Part shown: positions 13,791 to 58,240 of the stretch, one piece after another
How positions within the stretch are numbered: the first letter of the stretch is position 1
How the letters are laid out: each line of letters starts with the position of its first letter
Origin: Syncephalis fuscata S228
Taxonomy: Eukaryota; Fungi; Zoopagomycota
DNA: 64,000 nucleotides
Reading direction: 5' to 3'
Assembly: GCA_025786725.1 (NCBI GenBank)
Contig: JAHLTZ010000012.1
Span: forward strand, 372,001 to 436,000
Translations under genes and position numbers: made by a program
Notes under the pieces: generated by a model
Told to the model about the DNA's origin: nothing
What the model saw: the letters and a program-made list of their open reading frames with translations, nothing else
Databases searched by the model: none

Positions 13791-16700
13791 AATCAGTTAA
13801 TATACAATACTACTTACGTCCTATTAATATTAAATTATGAATACACAAAATAAATAGCATGTAATTAGTGAGTAATCAATTTATATACAGTAAAAATTAC
13901 CGCCTATTAATATTGGGTAATTGATATCATCAGTAAATAGCATGCAATTAGTTCATTGCTAATTAATATACGATATTACTTACAGACTATTAATATTAAA
14001 TAATCGGTACAATCAGTAAATAGCATAGTTAATGTATAGTTAGTCAACATATGCTTTACTTACACCCTATTAATATTAAACAATTGGTGCAATTAGTAAA
14101 TAGTATAATTAATATATACTCAGTCGATATACAATAACACTTACTATCTATTAATATTAAATAATTGGTACAATAAGTAAATAGCAGTCAATGTATAGTC
14201 AATGTATATACAATACAACTTACAACCTATTAATATTAAATAATTGATAAAATCAGTAAATAGCATGGGATTAGTGGGTAATCAGGTAATATACAATATC
14301 GCTTACAAGCTATTAATATTAAATAATTGGTACAATCAGTAAATAGCAATTAATGTATAGTCAATTTATATAAAATATCGCTTACAAACTATTAATATTA
14401 AATAAGCAGTACAATTAGTAAATTGCATAGTCAATGTATAGTCAGTTAATATACGATACAACTTACTATCTATTAATATTAAATAATTAACACCATCAGT
14501 AAATAGCATGGTTAATGCATAGTCCGTTAATACACAATACAGCTTACTTCCTATTAATATTAAATAATTGGTACAATCAGTAAATATATAGTTAATGTAT
14601 AGCAAATTAATATACAATACAACTTACGACCTATTAATATTAAATAATTAATACAATCAGTAAATAGCATGTGATTAGTGAGTAGTTAATTAATATACAA
14701 TATCGCTTACATTCTATTAATATTAAATAATTAGTACAATCAGTAAATAGCATGGTTAATGTATAGTCAATTTATATACAATACAACTTACCCTCTATTT
14801 ATATTAAATAAGCAGTGCAATTAGTAAACTGCATAGTCAATGTATAGTTAATTAATATACAATAGCACTTACCCCCTATTATGTTAAGTTATTGATACAC
14901 ACAGCACATAGTATATGATTAGCCAATGTTCAATTAATATACAATATAACTTACAAGCTATTAATATTAAATAGTTGGTGTAACCAGTAAATAACATAGT
15001 TAATGCATAGTTAGTTAATATATAATACGTGGGGGATGTTGGTAGCTTAGTAGCTAAAGGCAGCGTCTTCCGAGCTGAAAACACCGAGTTTAAATCTCAG
15101 TTTAAATCAGTCCTTAAGTGGAAAAATCCCCAGTTTTCTCTAGTTAACAAATTGCAAACCAGAGCCCAATAAGTAGGTCCGAAAACAAGATCTTGGCCAG
15201 AATAGCCAAGGAAAAATCAATTGGAACCAACTTATATGGACCAGATTTGCGCAAAAACATGGCAGTCCACCCGTTAATTTAAAAAAGTTCAATATAGTGG
15301 GAAGCAGCGCAAATTCTTTAATTATGTGCAGCGGGGGCTCACAAGCTTTTCAAAATAAAAAATAAAAAATATACAATACTACTTACGCCCTATTAATATT
15401 AAATTATGAATACACAAAATAAATAGCATGCAATTAGCTTATAGTTAATTTATATACAATAAAAATTACCGCCTATTAATATTGAGCAATTGATATCAGC
15501 AGTAAATAACACGTGATTAATGTATAATTAGTCAATATACAATACCACTTACGATCTATTAATATTAGACAATCAGTGTAATCAGTAAATATATAGTTAA
15601 TATATACCAGTTAATATACAATGCCACTTACCCTCTATTAATATTAAACAATCAATGCAATCAGCAAATAGCATAGTTACTATATAGTTAATATACAATG
15701 CCACTTACGGTCTATTAATATTAAACAATTGGTGTAATCAGTAAATGGCGTGGTTAATGTGTAGTTAATTAATATACAATACAACTTACCCTCTATTAAT
15801 AGTAAACAATTGGTGTAATCATCAAATAGCATAGTTAATGTATATTTAATTAATATACAATACCACTTACTGCCTAGTAATATTAAATAATTGATACAAT
15901 CAGTAGATAGCAGTTAGTATATAATTAATCAATATACAATACAACTTACCCTCTATTCATATTAAATAATTAATACCATCAGTAAATAGCATAGTCAATC
16001 TATTCAATCAATAGACGATACCACTTACCCACTATTAATTTCAATAATTAATATCATCAGCAAATAACGTAATTATATATAGTCAGTTAATATACAATAC
16101 CACTTACTGCCTATTAATGTTAAAAAACCAGTGCAATCAATAAATAGTATGTGATTCGTGAGTAATCAATTAATATACAATATAACTTACATTCTATTAA
16201 TATTTGTTGATACACACAGTACATGGATATAATTAGTGAATAATTAGTTAATATACAATACAACTTACTGGCTATTGTATTGAATTGTTGATACACACAC
16301 AATACATGGATATAATTAGTGTGTAGTCAGTTAATACACAATGTTACTTGCCCACTATTTTATCAAATTATTGATACAAATAGTGTATGACACATGATTA
16401 ATTTATGTCAGTTGATGTACAACGCTACTTACTGCCTATTAGTATGAAGTTATTGATACACACAGCACATATATATGATACAATGTTCAATTAATATACA
16501 ATATAACTTACAAGCTATTAATATTAAATAGTTGGTGTAACCAGTAAATAACATAGTTAATGCATAGTTAGTTAATATATAATACGTGGGGGATGTTGGT
16601 AGCTTAGTAGCTAAAGGCAGCGTCTTCCGAGCTGAAAACACCGAGTTTAAATCTCAGTTTAAATCAGTCCTTAAGTGGAAAAATCCCCCAGTTTTCTCTA

Positions 16701-17493
16701 GTTAACAAATTGCAAACCAAAACCCAATAAGTAGGTTTGGAAACAAGACATTGGCCAGAATAGCCGAGGAAAACAATTGGGACTAACTTCAAAAAATAGT
16801 GCTGTGTAGCACCATTTAAAGGAAGATGGCCCCCGTGTGAAATCTATATAAACCGGATTTTATGCAAAAAAGTGGCAGTCCACCCGTTAATTTAAAAAAA
16901 TTCAATATAGTGGAAGCAGCGTAAACTCTTTAATTATGTGCAGCGGGGGCTCACAAGTTCTTCAAAATAAAAATAGAAATAATACACAATACGCCTTACC
17001 ATCTATGCCATTAAGTTGTCGATACACACAATACATGGTATAATTAATTTATGTCAGCAACATACAATACCACCTACTGCCTATTAGTATTAATTCATTG
17101 ATACACATAGTACATAACATATAATTAATCAATGTTCAATTAGTATACAATACAACTTGCATTCCTCTAATATTAAGTTATTTATGAATACAGTACATGA
17201 CATATAATTAGTGTATGCTCTATTAATATGCAATACAACTTACTAGCTATTGATATTAAGTTATTGATAAACACAACACATAACATGTAATTAGTGAGTA
17301 ATTAATATACAATATAACTTACGGCCTATTATAGTTATTATTTATAAATACTATTAGTAAGTATAATGCTATAGTATATTTATTAATATCACAACATACC
17401 ACGACGAACTAGAGTTGGTTTAGCATCCACCATGGCTGTAACGGCCGCAAGCGCAACGATAATGGCACAAACGACAGCAATAAAAAGCTTCAT
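13742..17493 (-). CDS. Micro-exon gene A: secreted cysteine-rich peptide precursor (68 aa); 94-nt first exon, 35 micro-exons, 5-nt terminal coding exon
   Basis: Exon 1 (17493-17400) = MKLFIAVVCAIIVALAAVTAMVDAKPTLVRR+G, then GTATGT. Micro-exons, each flanked by TAG and GT (two GCAAGT) donors: gcc cta aggaat gca atg ctt gca tgg cca aat gca tgg agg gca agg acc agg atc gcg ggc ctt ggg agg aat gtc gaa ata ttt ctt gtt ata ggt tct gcg gac. Last exon is CAG|CA TAA (13746-13742). Spliced total is 207 nt with no internal stop. Confidence 0.88.
15029..15367 (+). mobile_element. SINE-like insertion (tRNA-like head, A-rich tail) in an intron of micro-exon gene A
   Basis: A-box-like TAGCTTAGTAGCTAAAG and B-box-like GAGTTTAAATCTC, with tail AAAATAAAAAATAAAAA. 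Flanked by AATATATAATAC (15017-15028) and AATATACAATAC (15368-15379), consistent with a 12-bp TSD. Confidence 0.65.
16586..16980 (+). mobile_element. Second copy of the SINE-like insertion at the equivalent intron position
   Basis: Head identical to the 15029 copy, ~55 bp longer internally; flanks AATATATAATAC (16574-16585) and AATACACAATAC (16981-16992). Confidence 0.65.
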
Positions 17494-50065: not shown

Positions 50066-50449
50066 GATTCGATTGTCATTGTAGGTTATCCGATACTCAC
50101 TCGAATGTTACTATTTTTGGCAAGTGCCAATGGATCGGAGGTAGAAAAATAGCCGACTACATGCCGAAGCAACTACAAATTAGATTAGCCAAATAAAATG
50201 ACAAATTATAGACCTGTGATAGCAAAATAGCAATAAACTGCTATTCATTTAAAGGACTGATTATATAGTGATTGCTTGTTAATTATACTATTTGAATTTT
50301 GTAAACGTCTCACCATGGAACCTGCAGTATCTATTCATTCACAAAATATACATATCGAAGAAGCATCAACCAAGCAGAAGGATGTCGAACCAATAATTGC
50401 CAATAATGAAGTCAAGACTTCGGCATTAGTGCTGCAATATTTGTTAAAT
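50066..50449 (+). repeat. 384-bp direct duplicate of 56549-56932 (promoter and first ~45 codons of the DUF3533-like gene)
   Basis: Matches from GATTCGATTGTCATTG to CAATATTTGTTAAAT; the reading frame stops almost immediately after the junction. Confidence 0.95.
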
Positions 50450-50459
50450 TAACGATTAG

Positions 50460-51254
50460 CATTTACTTTACACTCTCTAGTTTGAGTTTTCAAAGCAAAT
50501 TTATTTTAATCCGAGTCATGTCGTTGTTATGCACAACATAGTTATATTATTTCCTATTAAAGTATTGTTAATAGATTGATTTAAATAAACAATGTAACAT
50601 ACTATCCGACTACTTTGAAACATTTAAGCTTAATCATTGTTGTTGTGGCCATGTGTAGAAAGATTAGTAGAATATTAATAGAAGCCATATAATTGCAATT
50701 TCATGTTATCCCTTAGTTGTTATTGTTACTATGTACAGTGTAGTTTTTTTTGCGTCTGAATGGCCTCTTTTATTTTCTAATATCCTAATATTGCATTTTG
50801 GGCATATTTGCAATGTAAGACACTCGTTTATGGTGCTAAAAAGGTAGAACGACTAGCATTTCTAGTGTTCACCATTGTCTTGAGCATTCTTTGTATCAAC
50901 TTGGTAGGTGCAGTTTATTTTCCAACCATTAATAAAGCAAATGGCCTCCACCATATACAATAATGCTGGGTTGAGTGTTTTCACCAGGAAGATCTTGTGG
51001 CGACAGTTGTAACCAGAGAATACGGCATACCATTGAGGCTACTTGAACAGGTGTTGATGTAAAATAAGAGAAATAAAAACTAGGAATTGAATAGTGTTTT
51101 TATTGATGTTCTTTATTAATGTTTGAATACACATGTTGTTTATATTGTTATATTTGGCATTATTGTTTAATATATTATTGAGTAAAACAATAAGATAGCG
51201 ATAGGAAACGGGAGTGAAAGGAGTAAACAAAAAATGTGAGAGTCAAAGTAAAAT
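50460..51254. mobile_element. Short-TIR element at the outer end of cassette B (inverted counterpart of 19066-19780)
   Basis: Left end CATTTACTTTACACTCTC and right end GAGAGTCAAAGTAAAATG. Positions 50460-50690 are the reverse complement of the family end at ~37925-38133 and ~61340-61560. Confidence 0.65.
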
Positions 51255-52317
51255 GATTTGATCATGTAAATATTACGCGCTCAATCCAATGTTTTATTTT
51301 ATTTTAATATATAGCTATACAACTTTTATTAATGATCAATAAACAAAAACAATTTGTCTTTATATTATTGTAATAATGTATAATATTAGCTGCTTTAATA
51401 AGTAATTAAATTAAAACTTATAATAGTTGACTTAGATGGTGGTCATGTACATGCAAGTATATAAAAGTTAGATTGTGATTGTAAATATTATCTGTACAAA
51501 CAGTCAGAATTATAAAGTATAGTGACAATAATAAATAATTTAATTACTAACTTGTTAATTCAATTTTATCTACAACTCTCTGTTTTCTGTGCGTTAGCTT
51601 AGTTTAACGCTGCTGTTCTAACTGCATCAGCAACAACCAACTTTTGATAAACGCAGTTCAGCATAGCATAGCTGTAATGATTTGCTATAGGTTAAACCAG
51701 TAAACCTTTGAGCTGCCAATTGTTTTTCCATTGGTTTCTGCTTTGATTTGCTCTTCTATATTTCATCTTGCTTGACTTGTCACGATTGGTTTCAGAAATG
51801 TAAGCAGTACTTAGGCCTTGGACGATTACCGGTTTATGTACAATCCATTGACATTATGCACTCGAAACTGCTGGTATTTGGGCAGAACTTTCTATTGTGT
51901 CTAGTCTAGTGTCTGCATGTTACATTATGTAGAATTTAGACAATGCGATTAGTTCACAGCTGAAAATTGATAAAAATGGCTTGTTGGAATGTTCCATTGC
52001 TTAAAATGCCGCGATGCATCATGCTACAAACGGTACTTATTGTACAGACGACTTTAGATAATTGGATTAGCCGCTATTTGAATGATAGTGGTTGCACTAC
52101 ATGTAGCATGATATGTCTGGATGTAATGCATTTGTGAATTCAAAGCAATGATTACCCCATAATAATGGGCATAGTGTCAAATGAAATGCACTCATGTACC
52201 AATCAACACACTTTATAATTTAAAAATCATGGCTGACCTATGTGTAGCAGTAAAAGCTTGTATAAAAATACCGGTTTGCTACATTAAACTCGTTTTTGTA
52301 TCAGTGTCATTTGCTAT

Positions 52318-52780
52318 TCTGTATGCAACAGATATTGAGGACCGAATCGGTAGAAATGGTAGCAAAAGCACCACTATTGTTTTACAAAGCCAAACAATAT
52401 ACTTATTTTTACTAAATAGTTAAACCATGTAACAAAAAAATGCAGGCTAGTATGTCTATTTTTATTTCATATGTACTGGATTATTAACACTATTGTGTCA
52501 TTCATGTAAATTACTAGCAAGTTGAAGTAATGACCGGACAGGTTATGCACTATTTTGTATGCATGCAGATATTGAGGACCGAATCGGTAGAAATGGCAGC
52601 AAAAGCACCACTATCGTTTTTACAAAGTCAAACAATATACTTATTTTTACCGAATAGTGAAACCATGTAACAAAAAATACAGACTAATAGGCTTATCTCT
52701 ATCGCACATGTGCTGGATTATGAACACTATTACAGTACTCGTACAAATGACTAGCAGATTGGAGTAAAGACCGGATAGGT
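52318..52780 (+). repeat. Local tandem duplication (~240-bp unit) in the promoter arm of gene B
   Basis: CAGATATTGAGGACCGAATCGGTAGAAATGG.AGCAAAAGCACCACTAT occurs at ~52329 and ~52566. Confidence 0.85.
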
Positions 52781-53146
52781 TAAATTAAGACTAGGCAGAC
52801 TGAAGTAAAGGCTGGGAGCATTCTATCACACCATGAATCTATTGGTACATGCGCATTTCAAACCATTATTTGAATTACTTTATTGGTTCATACTACGCAG
52901 CAATGGTATATCTCGTGTGCTACAATATACTGACATCTCACCATAGCCGTAAGTTTAAATAGTCTACAAATATACACAACCAGCTGCGATATTATTATCA
53001 CACTTTACTTTCTGCTAAACACACACTACTATTCACTTTATATCAATCACACTCTACTTTTTGCTATACACGCACTACTCTCCACTCTATACCAACCACA
53101 CTCTACTATCTCTTTTATTTGTTTGTCTTAACAAATCAATATCACC

Positions 53147-54269
53147 ATGAAGCTTTCTATTGCTGTCGTTTACACCATCGCTGTGGCTTTGATAGCCACT
53201 ACAGCCATGGTGGATGCTAAACCAATCATGGTTCGTCGTAGTATGTTTCAATGACAATAGATATATTATATTATTATGCTTACTAACAAAATTTTTAACT
53301 TAATATTAATAGGTTGTAAGTTGTATTATATATTGACTGACTATGCACTAATTATGTGCCATGTATTATGCGTATAAACAACTTAATATTAATAGTGTGT
53401 AAGTTGTACTATATATTGACTGACTATGCACTAATTATGTACCATGTACTATGCATATAAACAACTTAATATTAACAGGGAGTAAGTTATATTATATATT
53501 GACTGACTATGCACTAATTATGTACCATGTATTATACGTATAAATAACTTAATATTAATAGATTGTAAGTTGTATTATATATTGACCGACTATGCACTGA
53601 CTATGTATTATACATATAAATAATTCAATATTAACAGGCAGTAAGTTCTATTATATATCAACCGACTATGCACTAATTATGTACCATGTATTATGTGTAT
53701 AAATAACCTAATATTAATAGCCTGTAAGTTGTATTATATACTAATGACTATCACTAATTATATACCATGTATTGTGCGTATAAACAACTTAATATTGGCA
53801 GTCTGTAAGTTTTATTATATATCAACCGACTATGCACTAATTATGTACCATGTATTATGTGTATAAACAACTTAATATTAATAGGGGGTAAATTATATTA
53901 TATATTGACTGGCTATGCACTAATTATTATTATATACTATGCGTATAAATAATTCAATATTAACAGGCAGTAAGTTGTATTATATATAACTGACTATGCA
54001 CTAATTATGTATATATACTATGCGTATAAATAACCTAATATTAATAGTGTAAGTTGTATTATATATTGATAATTATGCACTAATTATTTACCATGTATTG
54101 TGCGTATAAATAACTTAATATTAACAGGTCGTAAGTAGTATTATACGTTGACTGACCACATATTAATTATGCTATTTACTGATTGTACCGATTATTTAAT
54201 ATCAATATATTGATGGCTTATAAATTAATTATATGGCATATAATATCTTTATTTGTAAATACAGAATAA
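53147..54269 (+). CDS. Micro-exon gene B: secreted peptide precursor; 94-nt first exon, 11 micro-exons, terminal exon
   Basis: Exon 1 (53147-53240) = MKLSIAVVYTIAVALIATTAMVDAKPIMVRR+A, then GTATGT...TACTAAC...TAG. Micro-exons: gtt 53313, tgt 53396, gga 53479, att 53562, gca 53638, cct 53721, tct 53802, ggg 53885, gca 53967, t 54048, gtc 54128. Last exon CAG|AA TAA (54265-54269). Mature peptide begins SLWNCTFWG. Confidence 0.8.
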
Positions 54270-56091
54270 TCAATGGTTTCAAGACATCAGCATTGGTAGT
54301 GCAATCAAGCCACTATTCCAATACACTTTAGGTATATATTCGGTGAAAAGCAAGACCATTTGGCAACTACGCTGTCCAGTCTATTTATATATCAAGTTTT
54401 GGCCAATGCTCCGGTTTATCCAGTCTTTAATCAATGAGATCATTATTTTATCAACAAGATTGCAATCAGTTGTTTCTATTCAACTGTGCAAGCTTATAGT
54501 AATAAACCTATGGTTCCATCTTAACTATATACAATCAAATTGCTAAATCTATAATCATGTCCTATTTGCATTCAATTATTAATCAAATAATTAAATTAAT
54601 AACAAAATGTGTATGATCATATCGTGTAAGCTATAGGCATAGATTGGTATGGATAGTAACAAAGCTATTATTATCATATAGCCAAATAATAGTATGCTGA
54701 AATTAGAATAAATATGTTTTTTAATAAAACATGACAACAAAGCATAGAATATTATAAAACAAAATAAATAGACAAATCAAATACGTGAATAGTAATAGCG
54801 AAACTATACTGATGCAATTGACTAAAAGTAATGAACAAAATGAATCAAAATCTACTAAAGAATACATTTAGCAATAAAATTTTAGCGTTTGTTAATATAG
54901 TTTTTGCAATTTACAATATTATTAATATAGATGGACATATAGTATGTGTATAGAGAATAGACATGTACCGTATAATAATAATAAATAGTTTAATAATCAA
55001 TGACACTCACCACCCAGTTTCATCTTCAATAAAACAGCTATTAGTTTAAATGTGTGGGTATTATAGCCATTTAACTACCAAATTACTTAAATAAAGGACA
55101 GTGTGCTTAATATTGCTGAAAAAGTTATTTTTATTTAGTTAATAAAAACATCATAAGATTTGATACAAATCAAGTGGTTGAATAATCCGCCACAGCACCT
55201 TATAAGCCTCTTTCGCCATGTCCCATGACTTTTCTAAATTAGAATATTGGAGCAACTACTGCAATGTTTAAAATGAATGTTATAAGCAGATTGTTCTAGT
55301 TTATCAACGACAAATGTCATGTTGACGGCTTTATTTTGCATATCTTCGCTCTTGCTTAATACACCAACTAACTGATTTGAGTTAATCAAAGCAATAACAC
55401 TTTCATGTAATTCAAAATTGTTTAATTGCTAAATCTGATACTGAAACGCTTTAAACAAACCAGTATAATTTTATCTGTTGGTCAATTTTATATTTTAAAA
55501 AAATTATTAATTATATCATTTTTGTTTGCATTACATTTTATTATTTACTTTAATAGCTGTTTCATTAGTAGCTTGTATTTATTCAATAAAATTTATTACA
55601 GCATTAACTACTGTTTACTACTACTATTGCTAATTTACATATTATATTTTTGTTTTGTATTTTTAGTTGCATTTGCCACCAGTATATTATTAAAAGTCTA
55701 TTGGCAAATGAAACACAATTGACATTGCTGTTGGTATTGCTACAATTGACTAAATTACGTAAATAAGCAAAGTTTAAATTAAAATTGTTGCATTTATTGT
55801 AATTAGCTTTTTCTTATCAGGCATTTTTAGCTCTTATTACTCAACAATATTATAAATACATAATACTGTTACTCAACTAACAATAAATATGCTTTTTATA
55901 GTCCAATTCATTTTATTACTGATTTTGTAGCAACGACATTCTTTTTATCAATCAAAAGCAATTCAAGCTTTTTAATAAGAAATAATAGCGCCTGTTGAGC
56001 TATTATAATTGGCAGTGTGTATTAAATAATTAAATATATACTTGATGCTTTTACTTGTACATTTTTTGGTTTTACATTTGGGAATGTAGTA
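54220..56091. repeat. Downstream arm of cassette B (inverted copy of 11904-13790)
   Basis: Colinear reverse-complement identity with scattered differences. Confidence 0.93.
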
Positions 56092-56797
56092 GTATAATTT
56101 GTAATATAATTAGTAATAAATTTGATAATACCATTGTTACGGTTCTAGTTTAGAAATCATAATCTAGATGAGCAAGCAACATCTTATCCTGGAGTTATCT
56201 TATAACATTAATTTCTGATGTATATTAACGCTTACCTTTACGCTTAGAATATATGTATTGGTCGTATCGATTTGCTAATAGAACTTGGATGCTTTTTAGT
56301 ATTTCATCATTAACGCAGCATGCTAGTTCATGTGACTGCTCATATGCTCACAATTAGCAAGTAGCTATTCGTCATATCTTCTTAATAGACATTTGTTACT
56401 AGTAATCGGTACTAATATCCGATAAGTATATTAGTTCTGTGATCAATCACATGCAACTTTAGCTGGTTATCCAATCACATGGTATATCTCTTAATCACCC
56501 TTTTACAATATTCTGTCCGGAATATTAAAATAGTAACAACGGCATTGTGATTCGATTGTCATTGTAGGTTATCCGATACTCACTCGAATGTTACTATTTT
56601 TGGCAAGTGCCAATGGATCGGAGGTAGAAAAATAGCCGACTACATGCCGAAGCAACTACAAATTAGATTAGCCAAATAAAATGACAAATTATAGACCTGT
56701 GATAGCAAAATAGCAATAAACTGCTATTCATTTAAAGGACTGATTATATAGTGATTGCTTGTTAATTATACTATTTGAATTTTGTAAACGTCTCACC

Positions 56798-58240
56798 ATG
56801 GAACCTGCAGTATCTATTCATTCACAAAATATACATATCGAAGAAGCATCAACCAAGCAGAAGGATGTCGAACCAATAATTGCCAATAATGAAGTCAAGA
56901 CTTCGGCATTAGTGCTGCAATATTTGTTAAATCGACGTAATATTATATTGCTATTTGGTCTTGGTATAACCGTTTACATATACGCCTGGCTTTATATTGG
57001 AGGACTGTGGAATCCTATTAGCCATATAAGAAATGTCGAGATTGCATTACTTAATAGTGATAAGGGGTTTAATTTTACTAATGTACCGGATACTACCCGT
57101 GAATTAATACTTCAATCAACGGGGGGCCGTTCATTAGGCGAAGTCATTGGCAAAGCATTAACGAACGTACCAGATGCTAATTTTGACTGGAAATCGCAAG
57201 AATTCCAAATGACGCGCGATCAATTGCTTAAATCGATTGACGATGGCAATTTCGTAGCCGGCATCTATATCCCCACAACGTTTAGTCAGGACTTTTTATC
57301 GGCCTTTTCTGCGCCAAATACCTCGCAAAGTTACCAGAAAATGCAGATTGAGTATATCCACGACCAGGGTAGAAATTACGGCGCCGATAGCATTATCAGT
57401 CTTATCATTCAACGATTAATTACTGGTGTTAGTAGCGGGTTTGAAAAGCAACTTTTATCAAGTCCTAAAGCAGCTCAAATCGTCTTGGCAGCCCAGCCAA
57501 CTTTTTGGGAAACGCCGATTCAAACTATATCGACTACGCTGCATCCCGTTCATCGTTATGGACAAGGCTTTGCCTCATACGCATCAGTTGTCGTAATAAT
57601 TATTGGCTGCATCGGTGTTGTAACAGTTATAAATCGTTACGTCGATACAATGCCAGTCGTGCGTTTATTAAATCACGTTAATCAGAACGATGTTAGAACA
57701 ACTAAACCGACATTTAGCGTAGCACGCATTGTTATCATTAAACTAGGCATTATGATAGGTGGATTATTTATTTGCTCAATCTTTATATGGTCAGTACCGC
57801 TTTCGTTAGATGGTCATCAATTCGATGGTGCCTCGGCAGCAGCAGCTTTATTTTTTATTTTTTTGGCAGGTTTATCGGTACTTGGTTTCATCTCGTTATT
57901 ATGTGATTTAATTGGAGTAGAAATGTTTTCTGGTCCCGCGTCGACTCTGCTTATTTTATTTCTCACAACAGGCAGTGCCATTATGGATGACGAACTATCA
58001 GGAAGTATTTTTTACATGGGGCGCGCTTTTCCATTTTATTACGCCGTACGAGGATTGCGATTCATCTATTTTGGATCACTTCATAATAAGATGTGGATCA
58101 ACTGTGTCGTGCTTGCCGCATGGGCAATTGTAGCGCTAACTGCGACGGTGTTTGTAAATGCACGCCGCCTTTACCGGCAACGCCAAATCATATCTACTGG
58201 CGATAGTGGTCGAGCAACGGAGATGGCGGCACATCATTAA
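56798..58240 (+). CDS. DUF3533/SNG1-like (YhgE/Pip-related) multi-pass membrane protein, intronless
   Basis: One N-terminal TM, GGLWNP, IALLNSDKG, a large extracellular loop, HPV.RYGQGFASY, five further TMs and PFYYAVRGLRFIYFG. Confidence 0.75.
   Translation: MEPAVSIHSQNIHIEEASTKQKDVEPIIANNEVKTSALVLQYLLNRRNIILLFGLGITVYIYAWLYIGGLWNPISHIRNVEIALLNSDKGFNFTNVPDTTRELILQSTGGRSLGEVIGKALTNVPDANFDWKSQEFQMTRDQLLKSIDDGNFVAGIYIPTTFSQDFLSAFSAPNTSQSYQKMQIEYIHDQGRNYGADSIISLIIQRLITGVSSGFEKQLLSSPKAAQIVLAAQPTFWETPIQTISTTLHPVHRYGQGFASYASVVVIIIGCIGVVTVINRYVDTMPVVRLLNHVNQNDVRTTKPTFSVARIVIIKLGIMIGGLFICSIFIWSVPLSLDGHQFDGASAAAALFFIFLAGLSVLGFISLLCDLIGVEMFSGPASTLLILFLTTGSAIMDDELSGSIFYMGRAFPFYYAVRGLRFIYFGSLHNKMWINCVVLAAWAIVALTATVFVNARRLYRQRQIISTGDSGRATEMAAHH

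Follow-up and report, generated by a model that had tools for sequence, protein, structure and literature searches.

A spliced Syncephalis fuscata gene resembling an 83-base satellite, in which eleven 3-base exons spell a small predicted secreted peptide

Syncephalis fuscata is a zoopagomycete and a parasite of other moulds. The window analysed here is a stretch of 64,000 nt from strain S228 (assembly GCA_025786725.1, contig JAHLTZ010000012.1, positions 372,001 to 436,000 of the forward strand), in which two related genes are located, referred to as gene A (minus strand, ATG at 17493) and gene B (plus strand, 53147-54269). Tandem Repeats Finder reported an ordinary-looking repeat at gene B (53296-54156, period 83, 10.6 copies, 81% matches). 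It was found that this sequence, which resembles an 83-base satellite and was missed by public annotation, is a transcribed and spliced gene, and that its eleven 3-base exons spell a small peptide that is predicted to be secreted. A base-by-base check resolved gene B into exon 1, eleven tandem units of ~83 nt and a terminal exon, each unit (76-83 nt) consisting of a complete short intron and a variable micro-exon. The features are listed below, with the evidence for each.

52997-53146, plus strand: conserved upstream region and 5′ untranslated region (UTR); Tandem Repeats Finder row at 52997-53111, same sequence upstream of paralogs
53147-53240, plus strand: exon 1, 94 nt (31 codons and 1 nt); sequence, exon covered by RNA contigs
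53241-53312, plus strand: intron 1, 72 nt, with GTATGT donor, TACTAAC branch-site motif and TAG acceptor; sequence
53313-53315, plus strand: micro-exon 1, GTT; sequence, RNA contig aligning 6 letters beyond exon 1
53316-54127, plus strand: ten homologous introns of 73-80 nt; sequence, Tandem Repeats Finder, RNA contig depth near nil
53396-53398, plus strand: micro-exon 2, TGT; sequence and RNA contig
53479-53481, plus strand: micro-exon 3, GGA; sequence, first triplet of the 27 letters at the RNA joint
53562-53564, plus strand: micro-exon 4, ATT; sequence and RNA contig
53638-53640, plus strand: micro-exon 5, GCA; sequence and RNA contig
53721-53723, plus strand: micro-exon 6, CCT; sequence and RNA contig
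53802-53804, plus strand: micro-exon 7, TCT; sequence and RNA contig
53885-53887, plus strand: micro-exon 8, GGG, followed by donor GTAAAT; sequence and RNA contig
53967-53969, plus strand: micro-exon 9, GCA; sequence and RNA contig
54048-54048, plus strand: micro-exon 10, 1 nt (T) in the assembly and AAT in the RNA contig; sequence and RNA contig
54128-54130, plus strand: micro-exon 11, GTC; sequence and RNA contig
54131-54264, plus strand: last intron, 134 nt, formed from an array unit joined to a degenerate one, with ...TTTGTAAATACAG at its end; sequence, acceptor 54264/54265 used in RNA
54265-54269, plus strand: start of the terminal exon, AA completing CAA (Gln), then TAA stop; sequence and RNA contig
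54270-54465, plus strand: 3′ UTR, 81-98% column identity across the family; conservation profile, RNA depth high to ~54463 and then dropping

The upstream region and 5′ UTR hold a 49-nt motif in 2.3 copies (52997-53111), and the RNA contigs start at ~53020-53056. Exon 1 encodes Met-Lys, ~18 hydrophobic or small residues which by inspection look like a signal-peptide core, and then MVDAKPIMVRR. Its last base (A) begins the next codon, giving a phase-1 donor, GTATGT at 53241. The 5′ part of intron 1 lies outside the 83-nt repeat. The array introns have GTAAGT as donor and CACTAAT as branch-site motif, lack any AG ahead of the acceptor and end in a AATATTAA(T/C)AG acceptor, the unit pattern being ...AATATTAA(T/C)AG, then NNN, then GTAAGT...; TACAG at 54264 closes the last intron. 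The preliminary description of this DNA had read exon 1 of gene B as a 94-nt homolog of that of gene A, with 8 of 31 residues differing and the same phase-1 donor, and had proposed a shared terminal exon and eleven micro-exons. All of this was borne out base by base. The two first exons differ at 22 of 94 bases and both end in phase 1, the terminal exon is CA + TAA in gene A and AA + TAA in gene B, and the eleven micro-exons were all located, from 53313 to 54128, the spacers reading GTT TGT GGA ATT GCA CCT TCT GGG GCA T GTC.

The spacers of gene B are only 30% identical pairwise, compared with 82% for the 25 + 25 flanking intron bases. Column entropy was 1.61 bits (range 1.6-1.7) for the micro-exons and 0.40 bits for the 25 + 25 flanking intron columns. 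The variability of the micro-exons amid conserved introns exceeds chance.

Evidence for the transcript was obtained from the one public run (X1) in which part of the locus is present; X1 is kept as contigs and was aligned to 52800-54700. Contig depth cannot rank genes, rare isoforms are lost from contigs, and only contig positions were used. The X1 contigs cover two stretches, 53020-53247 with the 5′ UTR and exon 1, and 54144-54527 with the last part of the final intron, the terminal exon and the 3′ UTR, and the array between them (53248-54143) is almost free of contigs. X1 was treated as complementary DNA (cDNA): with hundreds of such arrays in the genome, a library made from DNA could not leave the array bare. 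Between the exon-1 donor region and 54265/54266 there are five joints. In the contig whose joint runs from 53246 to 54265, the letters in between are GGA ATT GCA CCT TCT GGG GCA AAT GTC, which are micro-exons 3-11 with the genomic order kept. We infer that the six letters placed by the aligner on GTATGT are GTT + TGT with one mismatch, i.e. micro-exons 1 and 2. Exon 1 and the terminal exon are thus separated in the spliced contig by 33 letters (11 × 3). A 24-letter string that matches eight dispersed triplets in order cannot arise as an artefact of de Bruijn assembly, and the contig is direct evidence that splicing of the 3-nt exons proceeds as predicted. All eleven internal exons are 3 nt long in RNA, and 10 of the 11 are so in the assembly. 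Since the introns are in phase 1, each residue is read from the last base of one micro-exon and the first two of the next, and the spliced frame is ...VRR-SLWNCTFWGKCQ-stop, giving a precursor of 43 residues. This spliced transcript is new evidence for the 3-nt-exon architecture of gene B.

Assembly and RNA contig disagree at unit 10, where the former shows one T (54048) and the latter AAT; the rest of the contig is identical to locus B. No canonical splice sites of the assembled sequence could yield AAT at this place. Read literally, the assembled gene gives ...FWGMSIINGF..., with the frame shifted and a 32-residue tail running to a stop in the 3′ UTR, while skipping of unit 10 would yield ...FWGSQ-stop. 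The product previously proposed, ...VRR-SLWNCTFWG(M...), was therefore right in part: conceptual splicing does give SLWNCTFWG, but the (M...) tail, which arose because unit 10 is a single T in the assembly, is wrong, since the AAT in RNA leads to GKCQ-stop. We think that an assembly error or an allelic loss of 2 nt explains the mismatch; a 2-nt indel is a common error type in AT-rich long-read assemblies. Another explanation would be that the architecture is real and the assembled gene B is a pseudogene, the RNA contig having come from an intact allele, nucleus or strain. The T in place of AAT and the shifted literal reading are what this explanation would predict, and decayed members are clearly present in the family. 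Nevertheless, the contig otherwise matches locus B exactly, indels of this kind are frequent assembly errors, and the closest paralog (L055) retains G-K-C at the place homologous to unit 10. A second near-identical B locus was not found in the assembly, where the closest 3′ array is 88% identical and the best full-length non-self match to exon 1 with the 5′ UTR is 91%; two matches of 95% to exon 1 are partial, and both come from an intronless gene whose payload is different. A pseudogene at the assembled locus is accordingly considered unlikely, though worth reckoning with.

When exon 1 with the 5′ UTR of gene B was searched against the 29.4-Mb assembly, 40 scored matches (87-95% identity) and 302 first-look candidates were obtained, which supplies the enumeration of paralogs that the preliminary description had called for; the 3′ part of the array gave 240 candidates. 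The census reported below draws on the window together with 20 long and 36 short loci. First exons ending in RR or GR are 94, 97, 112 or 115 nt long in the family, all 1 mod 3, while two near-identical loci with a 92-nt exon 1 appear broken. RR stands at the end of exon 1 in gene B, gene A and nearly all paralogs, with GR in the L048/L050 pair. A simple splice-site chain model was applied to 16 long loci and 5 B-like loci. Many of the modelled peptides are open exactly up to the TAA of the terminal exon, and they are Cys- and Trp-rich with mostly even numbers of Cys. Up to ~38 consecutive 3-nt exons occur in sister loci. From its sequence, gene B belongs to a sub-family of short predicted loop peptides, which includes a C-x4-C 8-mer (L033), a C-x7-C 14-mer (L050) and a 4-Cys 17-mer (L055). 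The last of these shares W-N...C-x-F-x-G-K-C with gene B and differs from it synonymously at N, F, G and K.

The coding constraint on the arrays was measured in 46 non-redundant runs, totalling 321 units, in which successive 3-nt exons could be recognised with confidence. Stops in phase 1 numbered 2 of 275, where 15.3 ± 3.0 were expected after shuffling exon order within runs and 18.7 from base composition. No shuffle gave a count as low (0 of 2000 and 0 of 5000, with minima of 7 and 6). In phase 2 the stops were 16 of 275. Because neighbouring spacers sit 80 nt apart in DNA, the selection that links them must act on the spliced product. Cys is the commonest residue (14%) in the peptides of these runs. 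Two outcomes had been named beforehand that would count against a constant leader with a variable payload of about one codon per exon, namely the lack of spliced transcripts and arrays ridden with stops. A contig with ordered micro-exons was found and phase-1 stops are depleted; together with the collinear intronless paralogs described below, these results uphold the proposal. They also bear on the view that the array is non-coding, a satellite or what is left of a mobile element, with AG-NNN-GTAAGT repeated through common descent and the apparent peptide a product of chance. Such a view would fit the plain 83-nt repeat reported by Tandem Repeats Finder and the position of gene B within a ~5.5-kb multi-copy cassette that has no long open reading frames (ORFs) and is flanked by a 384-bp direct duplication. 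It is contradicted by the spliced contig, by three exon columns near maximal entropy in a repeat that is 82% conserved, by the depletion of stops in one phase only and by Cys-rich peptides mostly with even Cys numbers, and its probability was judged to be negligible.

The consensus of 294 regular units was GTAAGTTGTATTGTATATTAA...CATTAAT/CACTAAT...TTTAATATTAATAG. The best-conserved parts of the unit are the donor, the CTAAT-type branch motif and the acceptor region, with donor and acceptor near-invariant. In 286 of the 294 units the 43 nt that precede the acceptor are free of AG, which makes up 0.9% of dinucleotides in the remaining intron. An intron subtype of its own had been ascribed to gene B, which did not hold: its motif GACTATGCACTAATTATG, which contains the branch site, recurs in at least seven loci, being found 3-7 times (at most one mismatch) in L032-L036, L050 and L055/L007. 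Judged from these sequences, the subtype marks a sub-family of loci and not a single locus. The related suggestion that units are homogenised within each locus was supported in general, since the nearest neighbour of a unit lay in the same locus for 116 of 294 units against 19.7 expected, but it was weaker for gene B itself, where this was so for 4 of 10 units, the other six being closest to L055 or L050 units (90-95% identity), with the subtype spanning loci. Local tandem duplication explains the clustering as well as homogenisation does. RNA structure was also considered. Folding of three B introns and two junction-centred segments gave z values of -1.4 to +1.3, i.e. no significant structure, and the idea of a structure presenting the micro-exon was dropped as unsupported. 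Pairing between the 5′ splice site and the pre-acceptor region (AAGUUGU with ACAACUU) was seen in 2 of the 3 folded introns and was not significant.

Five of the 22 long loci are intronless: their ORF is uninterrupted, and in upstream region, leader, stop context and 3′ UTR they agree with the array genes. Three of these five encode 6-Cys peptides of 27-38 residues. The intronless members are L040/L056 (C347:4088-4984), L044 (C57:350447), L048 (C13:198444) and L049 (C240:2512); L040 and L056 form an inverted pair ~630 bp apart on one contig. L048 encodes ...GR-GWKPCWPRPWC, and the spliced array of L050, 20 kb away on the same contig, encodes ...GR-ALEPCWRPRPLWCP. The two payloads are collinear (...CWPRPWC and ...CWRPRPLWC), by which the in silico splicing was independently validated. 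It was also observed that L048 and some array genes have two or three tandem pro-region motifs (VDAKP.. / VDDKP..). The intronless members fit intron loss via an RNA copy. They also raise the question of whether the B array could be an unspliced, dead tandem-repeat relic, with the RNA contig derived from an unassembled intronless retrocopy of gene B. Intronless members do exist, and the assembly, in 371 contigs, may be incomplete. But an intronless copy presupposes a spliced mRNA of such an array, so that splicing would be implied anyway. Moreover, the depletion of phase-1 stops was measured on the arrays themselves, splice signals and AG-free tracts are kept in 286 of 294 units, and no other full-length match to exon 1 of gene B exceeds 91%. 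We therefore regard a retrocopy origin of the contig as very improbable, and gene B is treated below as a spliced gene.

Public S. fuscata gene models (P0001, P0002 and most of P0004-P0014; NCBI KAI95...) start with the right leader and continue into tails taken from introns or incorrect exons, 3-nt exons being invisible to the annotation pipeline. The leader and payload of the family had no Pfam match at E values up to 1 and no PDB chain at E values up to 10. A word-indexed protein search with an intronless sister returned 2 proteins, both from S. fuscata. A profile search of 1.84 billion representatives returned 14 proteins, and the ten of these that were looked up, like the two from the word-indexed search, were each an S. 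fuscata 'hypothetical protein'. By these searches the family is a large, species-restricted set of predicted prepropeptide genes of S. fuscata.

On the basis of these results, a route from gene to peptide can be proposed. Exon 1 would provide a signal peptide followed by a short pro-region with Arg-Arg at its end, and the mature peptide would be supplied by the eleven consecutive 3-nt exons, each lying between nearly identical spliceosomal introns of ~80 nt. Twelve introns would be removed by intron-definition splicing to give an mRNA of ~430 nt. Recognition of each intron would presumably draw on its perfect GTAAGT donor and CTAAT branch site and on the AG-free tract that leads to a YAG acceptor. 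The donor may have been kept perfect on its intron side because, given just three variable bases upstream, it cannot depend on exon-side pairing with U1. The introns would be removed one after another, because a donor lies 3 nt from the preceding acceptor and both could hardly be occupied together. The 43-residue precursor, ending in SLWNCTFWGKCQ, would be secreted and cut after RR by a kexin-type protease encoded in the genome; a kexin P-domain (PF01483) was found at C317:798682-798852 (E 4.3e-15, 60 bits, above the curated cut-off). The cleaved peptide could then be closed by one disulfide into a Trp-rich loop, which probably acts outside the cell in the dealings of the mycoparasite with hosts or competitors. 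Other members may likewise be secreted, kexin-cut and disulfide-closed peptides for antagonism or host interaction. During evolution, arrays would grow or shrink by duplication or loss of whole 83-nt units, each such step lengthening or shortening the mRNA by exactly one codon. Substitutions within the three bases of a micro-exon would alter the peptide while the intron is retained, and some copies would have shed all introns via an RNA copy.

Several points weigh against the interpretation of gene B as an intact member of such a family. The 1-nt exon at 54048 means that the assembled copy may be a broken allele. The X1 record does not state that it is RNA, its nature having been deduced from contig positions, and the RNA support specific to gene B is one contig from one run. 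In-frame stops occurred in the automatic splice models of winA, L037, L041, L051 and L053, which may be pseudogenes or parser errors. The signal peptide and the kexin cleavage were read from the sequence by eye, and the mature peptide is a prediction. Taking both sides together, we hold it highly probable that gene B has the architecture and splicing described and is a functional member of a prepropeptide family; this judgement is made on the gene and its splicing and excludes the proposed role of the peptide.

Gene B lies in a cassette that is shared with the gene A locus, whose outer parts are as follows.

50636-52438, plus strand: upstream portion of the duplicated cassette, without a long ORF; 94% identity with 19688-17877 beside gene A
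54466-56100, plus strand: downstream part of the cassette; common to the gene A locus and other loci

The alignment of 53300-56100 with 14726-11895 at the gene A locus was 87% identical. The cassette is bracketed by direct 384-bp copies that are 100% identical (50066-50449 and 56549-56932), suggesting from the sequence that it may have arrived by an event which duplicated the target. There is no ORF of at least 100 aa between 50400 and 56600 and no transposase-like ORF inside the cassette, and a transposon reading was rejected on the former ground. The second 384-bp copy overlaps the start of a DUF3533 membrane-protein gene at 56759. Just upstream of the promoter region of gene B, a 237-bp segment is tandemly duplicated (52314-52782, 84% identity), and one of its copies matches 18006-17843 beside gene A. 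The array of gene A (minus strand) is interrupted by two copies of a ~400-nt element (15000-15390 and 16590-17000), both of which end in ...GCTCGGAAGACGCTGCCTTTAGCTACTAAGCTACCAACATCCCCC and have a tRNA-related look. If gene A is still spliced, these elements would make introns of ~430 and ~560 nt.

No description of arrays of 3-nt exons was found in the full-text literature, with fungi, Zoopagomycota and Syncephalis fuscata included in the search and subscription journals outside its coverage. According to a 2024 paper, filamentous fungi had so far yielded no description of functional micro-exons (PMC11121469). The nearest described system is the micro-exon genes (MEGs) of schistosomes, comprising 35 genes with exons of 3-81 bp between introns of up to 5 kb (PMC10526429). 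Like gene B, the MEGs of Schistosoma and other flatworms have a signal-peptide first exon (predicted for gene B), a conventional last exon, and a coding sequence that is for the most part divided among very short exons, each a multiple of three long; they too belong to a parasite, have secreted products (predicted for gene B) and form a lineage-restricted family without homologues elsewhere. In gene B, the coding sequence between the first and last exons is likewise contained in micro-exons of a multiple of 3. In contrast to MEGs, every internal exon of gene B is exactly 3 nt, its introns are short (72-134 nt), mutually 82% identical and arranged as a tandem repeat instead of being long and unrelated, and all of them are in phase 1, so that codons straddle exons. 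The host is a zoopagomycete, and common descent with the flatworm families is not indicated, as there is no sequence relationship (S. fuscata for every profile-search protein that was looked up, no Pfam match). MEG variation is characterised by alternative splicing, protein variants being made by including or skipping micro-exons. Judged on sequence features, gene B would work like a MEG and is not a member of that group.

Other systems resemble gene B in part. Cone-snail toxin superfamilies share with the family a conserved signal and pro-region, a basic cleavage site and a short, hypervariable, disulfide-rich mature peptide (predicted for gene B), and they are likewise large and strongly expressed. 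The mature region of conotoxins is one ordinary exon, whereas the variable region of the B family is split into 3-nt exons, and there is no homology. Recursive splicing at ratchet points also has a donor almost directly after an acceptor and requires sequential reactions. At ratchet points one long animal intron is removed stepwise and 0 nt stay in the mRNA, whereas gene B leaves 3 coding bases per step and its introns are separate and short. Intron gain from tandem AG|GT segments and introner-like elements similarly produces introns from copied sequence, with many near-identical copies per genome. Introners are dispersed into unrelated genes, whereas in gene B the unit is an intron with one 3-nt exon, placed head to tail inside one gene family; the array matches that were examined were other arrays of this family. 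Finally, Kex2-processed fungal peptides (KEPs and the precursors of pheromones or of ribosomally synthesised and post-translationally modified peptides) have a signal peptide, a pro-region with a dibasic end and a short core, as predicted for gene B, where a conserved dibasic site precedes the payload and a convertase P-domain is present in the genome. Such precursors usually carry repeated cores in one exon, whereas gene B has one core.

Public metagenome contigs were searched for runs of three ATAG-NNN-GTAAGT sites at spacings of 60-90 nt, and at least 120 contigs (L057-L176) with such arrays were found, with GC contents of 15-48% and periods of 68-99 nt. Many of the arrays listed have 5-20 units with variable triplets and their own GTAAGT donor, CTRAY branch site and YAG acceptor (L094, L104, L129, L144, L160 and L171 may serve as examples). 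Neither the leader nor the intron unit of gene B had a match in the listed contigs. Flanks were more conserved than triplets in 44 of 48 arrays, a comparison that is biased because the arrays had been pre-selected for at least four distinct triplets; only those with a flank identity of at least 0.8 are convincing, and in these (flanks 80-92%) the triplet identity was 0.23-0.57. Among the arrays listed, stop triplets in phase 0 numbered 1 of 398 against 14.5 expected, and stops in phases 1 and 2 occurred at about the shuffle rate. Three arrays with an invariant GGA resemble plain satellites, and a search upstream of the listed arrays for a signal-peptide first exon gave one weak candidate only. 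These arrays are a lead and not a result. That intron arrays with single 3-nt exons are a general, unrecognised way of building and evolving peptide genes is possible, though we hold it only tentatively; if the metagenome arrays are expressed, the layout would have arisen repeatedly, and it would allow single-residue in-frame indels, shuffling of residues by unequal recombination between intron repeats and possibly peptide variants produced by unit skipping.

Single 3-nt exons are known as rarities. Eleven of them in succession, precisely spliced, and up to ~38 in sister loci, would set a new lower bound for what a spliceosome handles routinely, and gene B would offer a natural system in which to study splicing that does without exon definition. 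The ~150-300 family loci resemble satellites, and in public annotation they are either absent or carry wrong tails; other genomes and metagenomes probably suffer from the same oversight. The family reverses the usual pattern, in that introns are conserved and exons are free. As the unit is one intron with one codon's worth of coding sequence, gain or loss of a repeat would edit the peptide residue by residue with the frame kept. For S. fuscata, the family would represent a mycoparasite's large, hypervariable set of predicted Cys- and Trp-rich secreted peptides, which are candidates for antifungal or host-manipulating agents.

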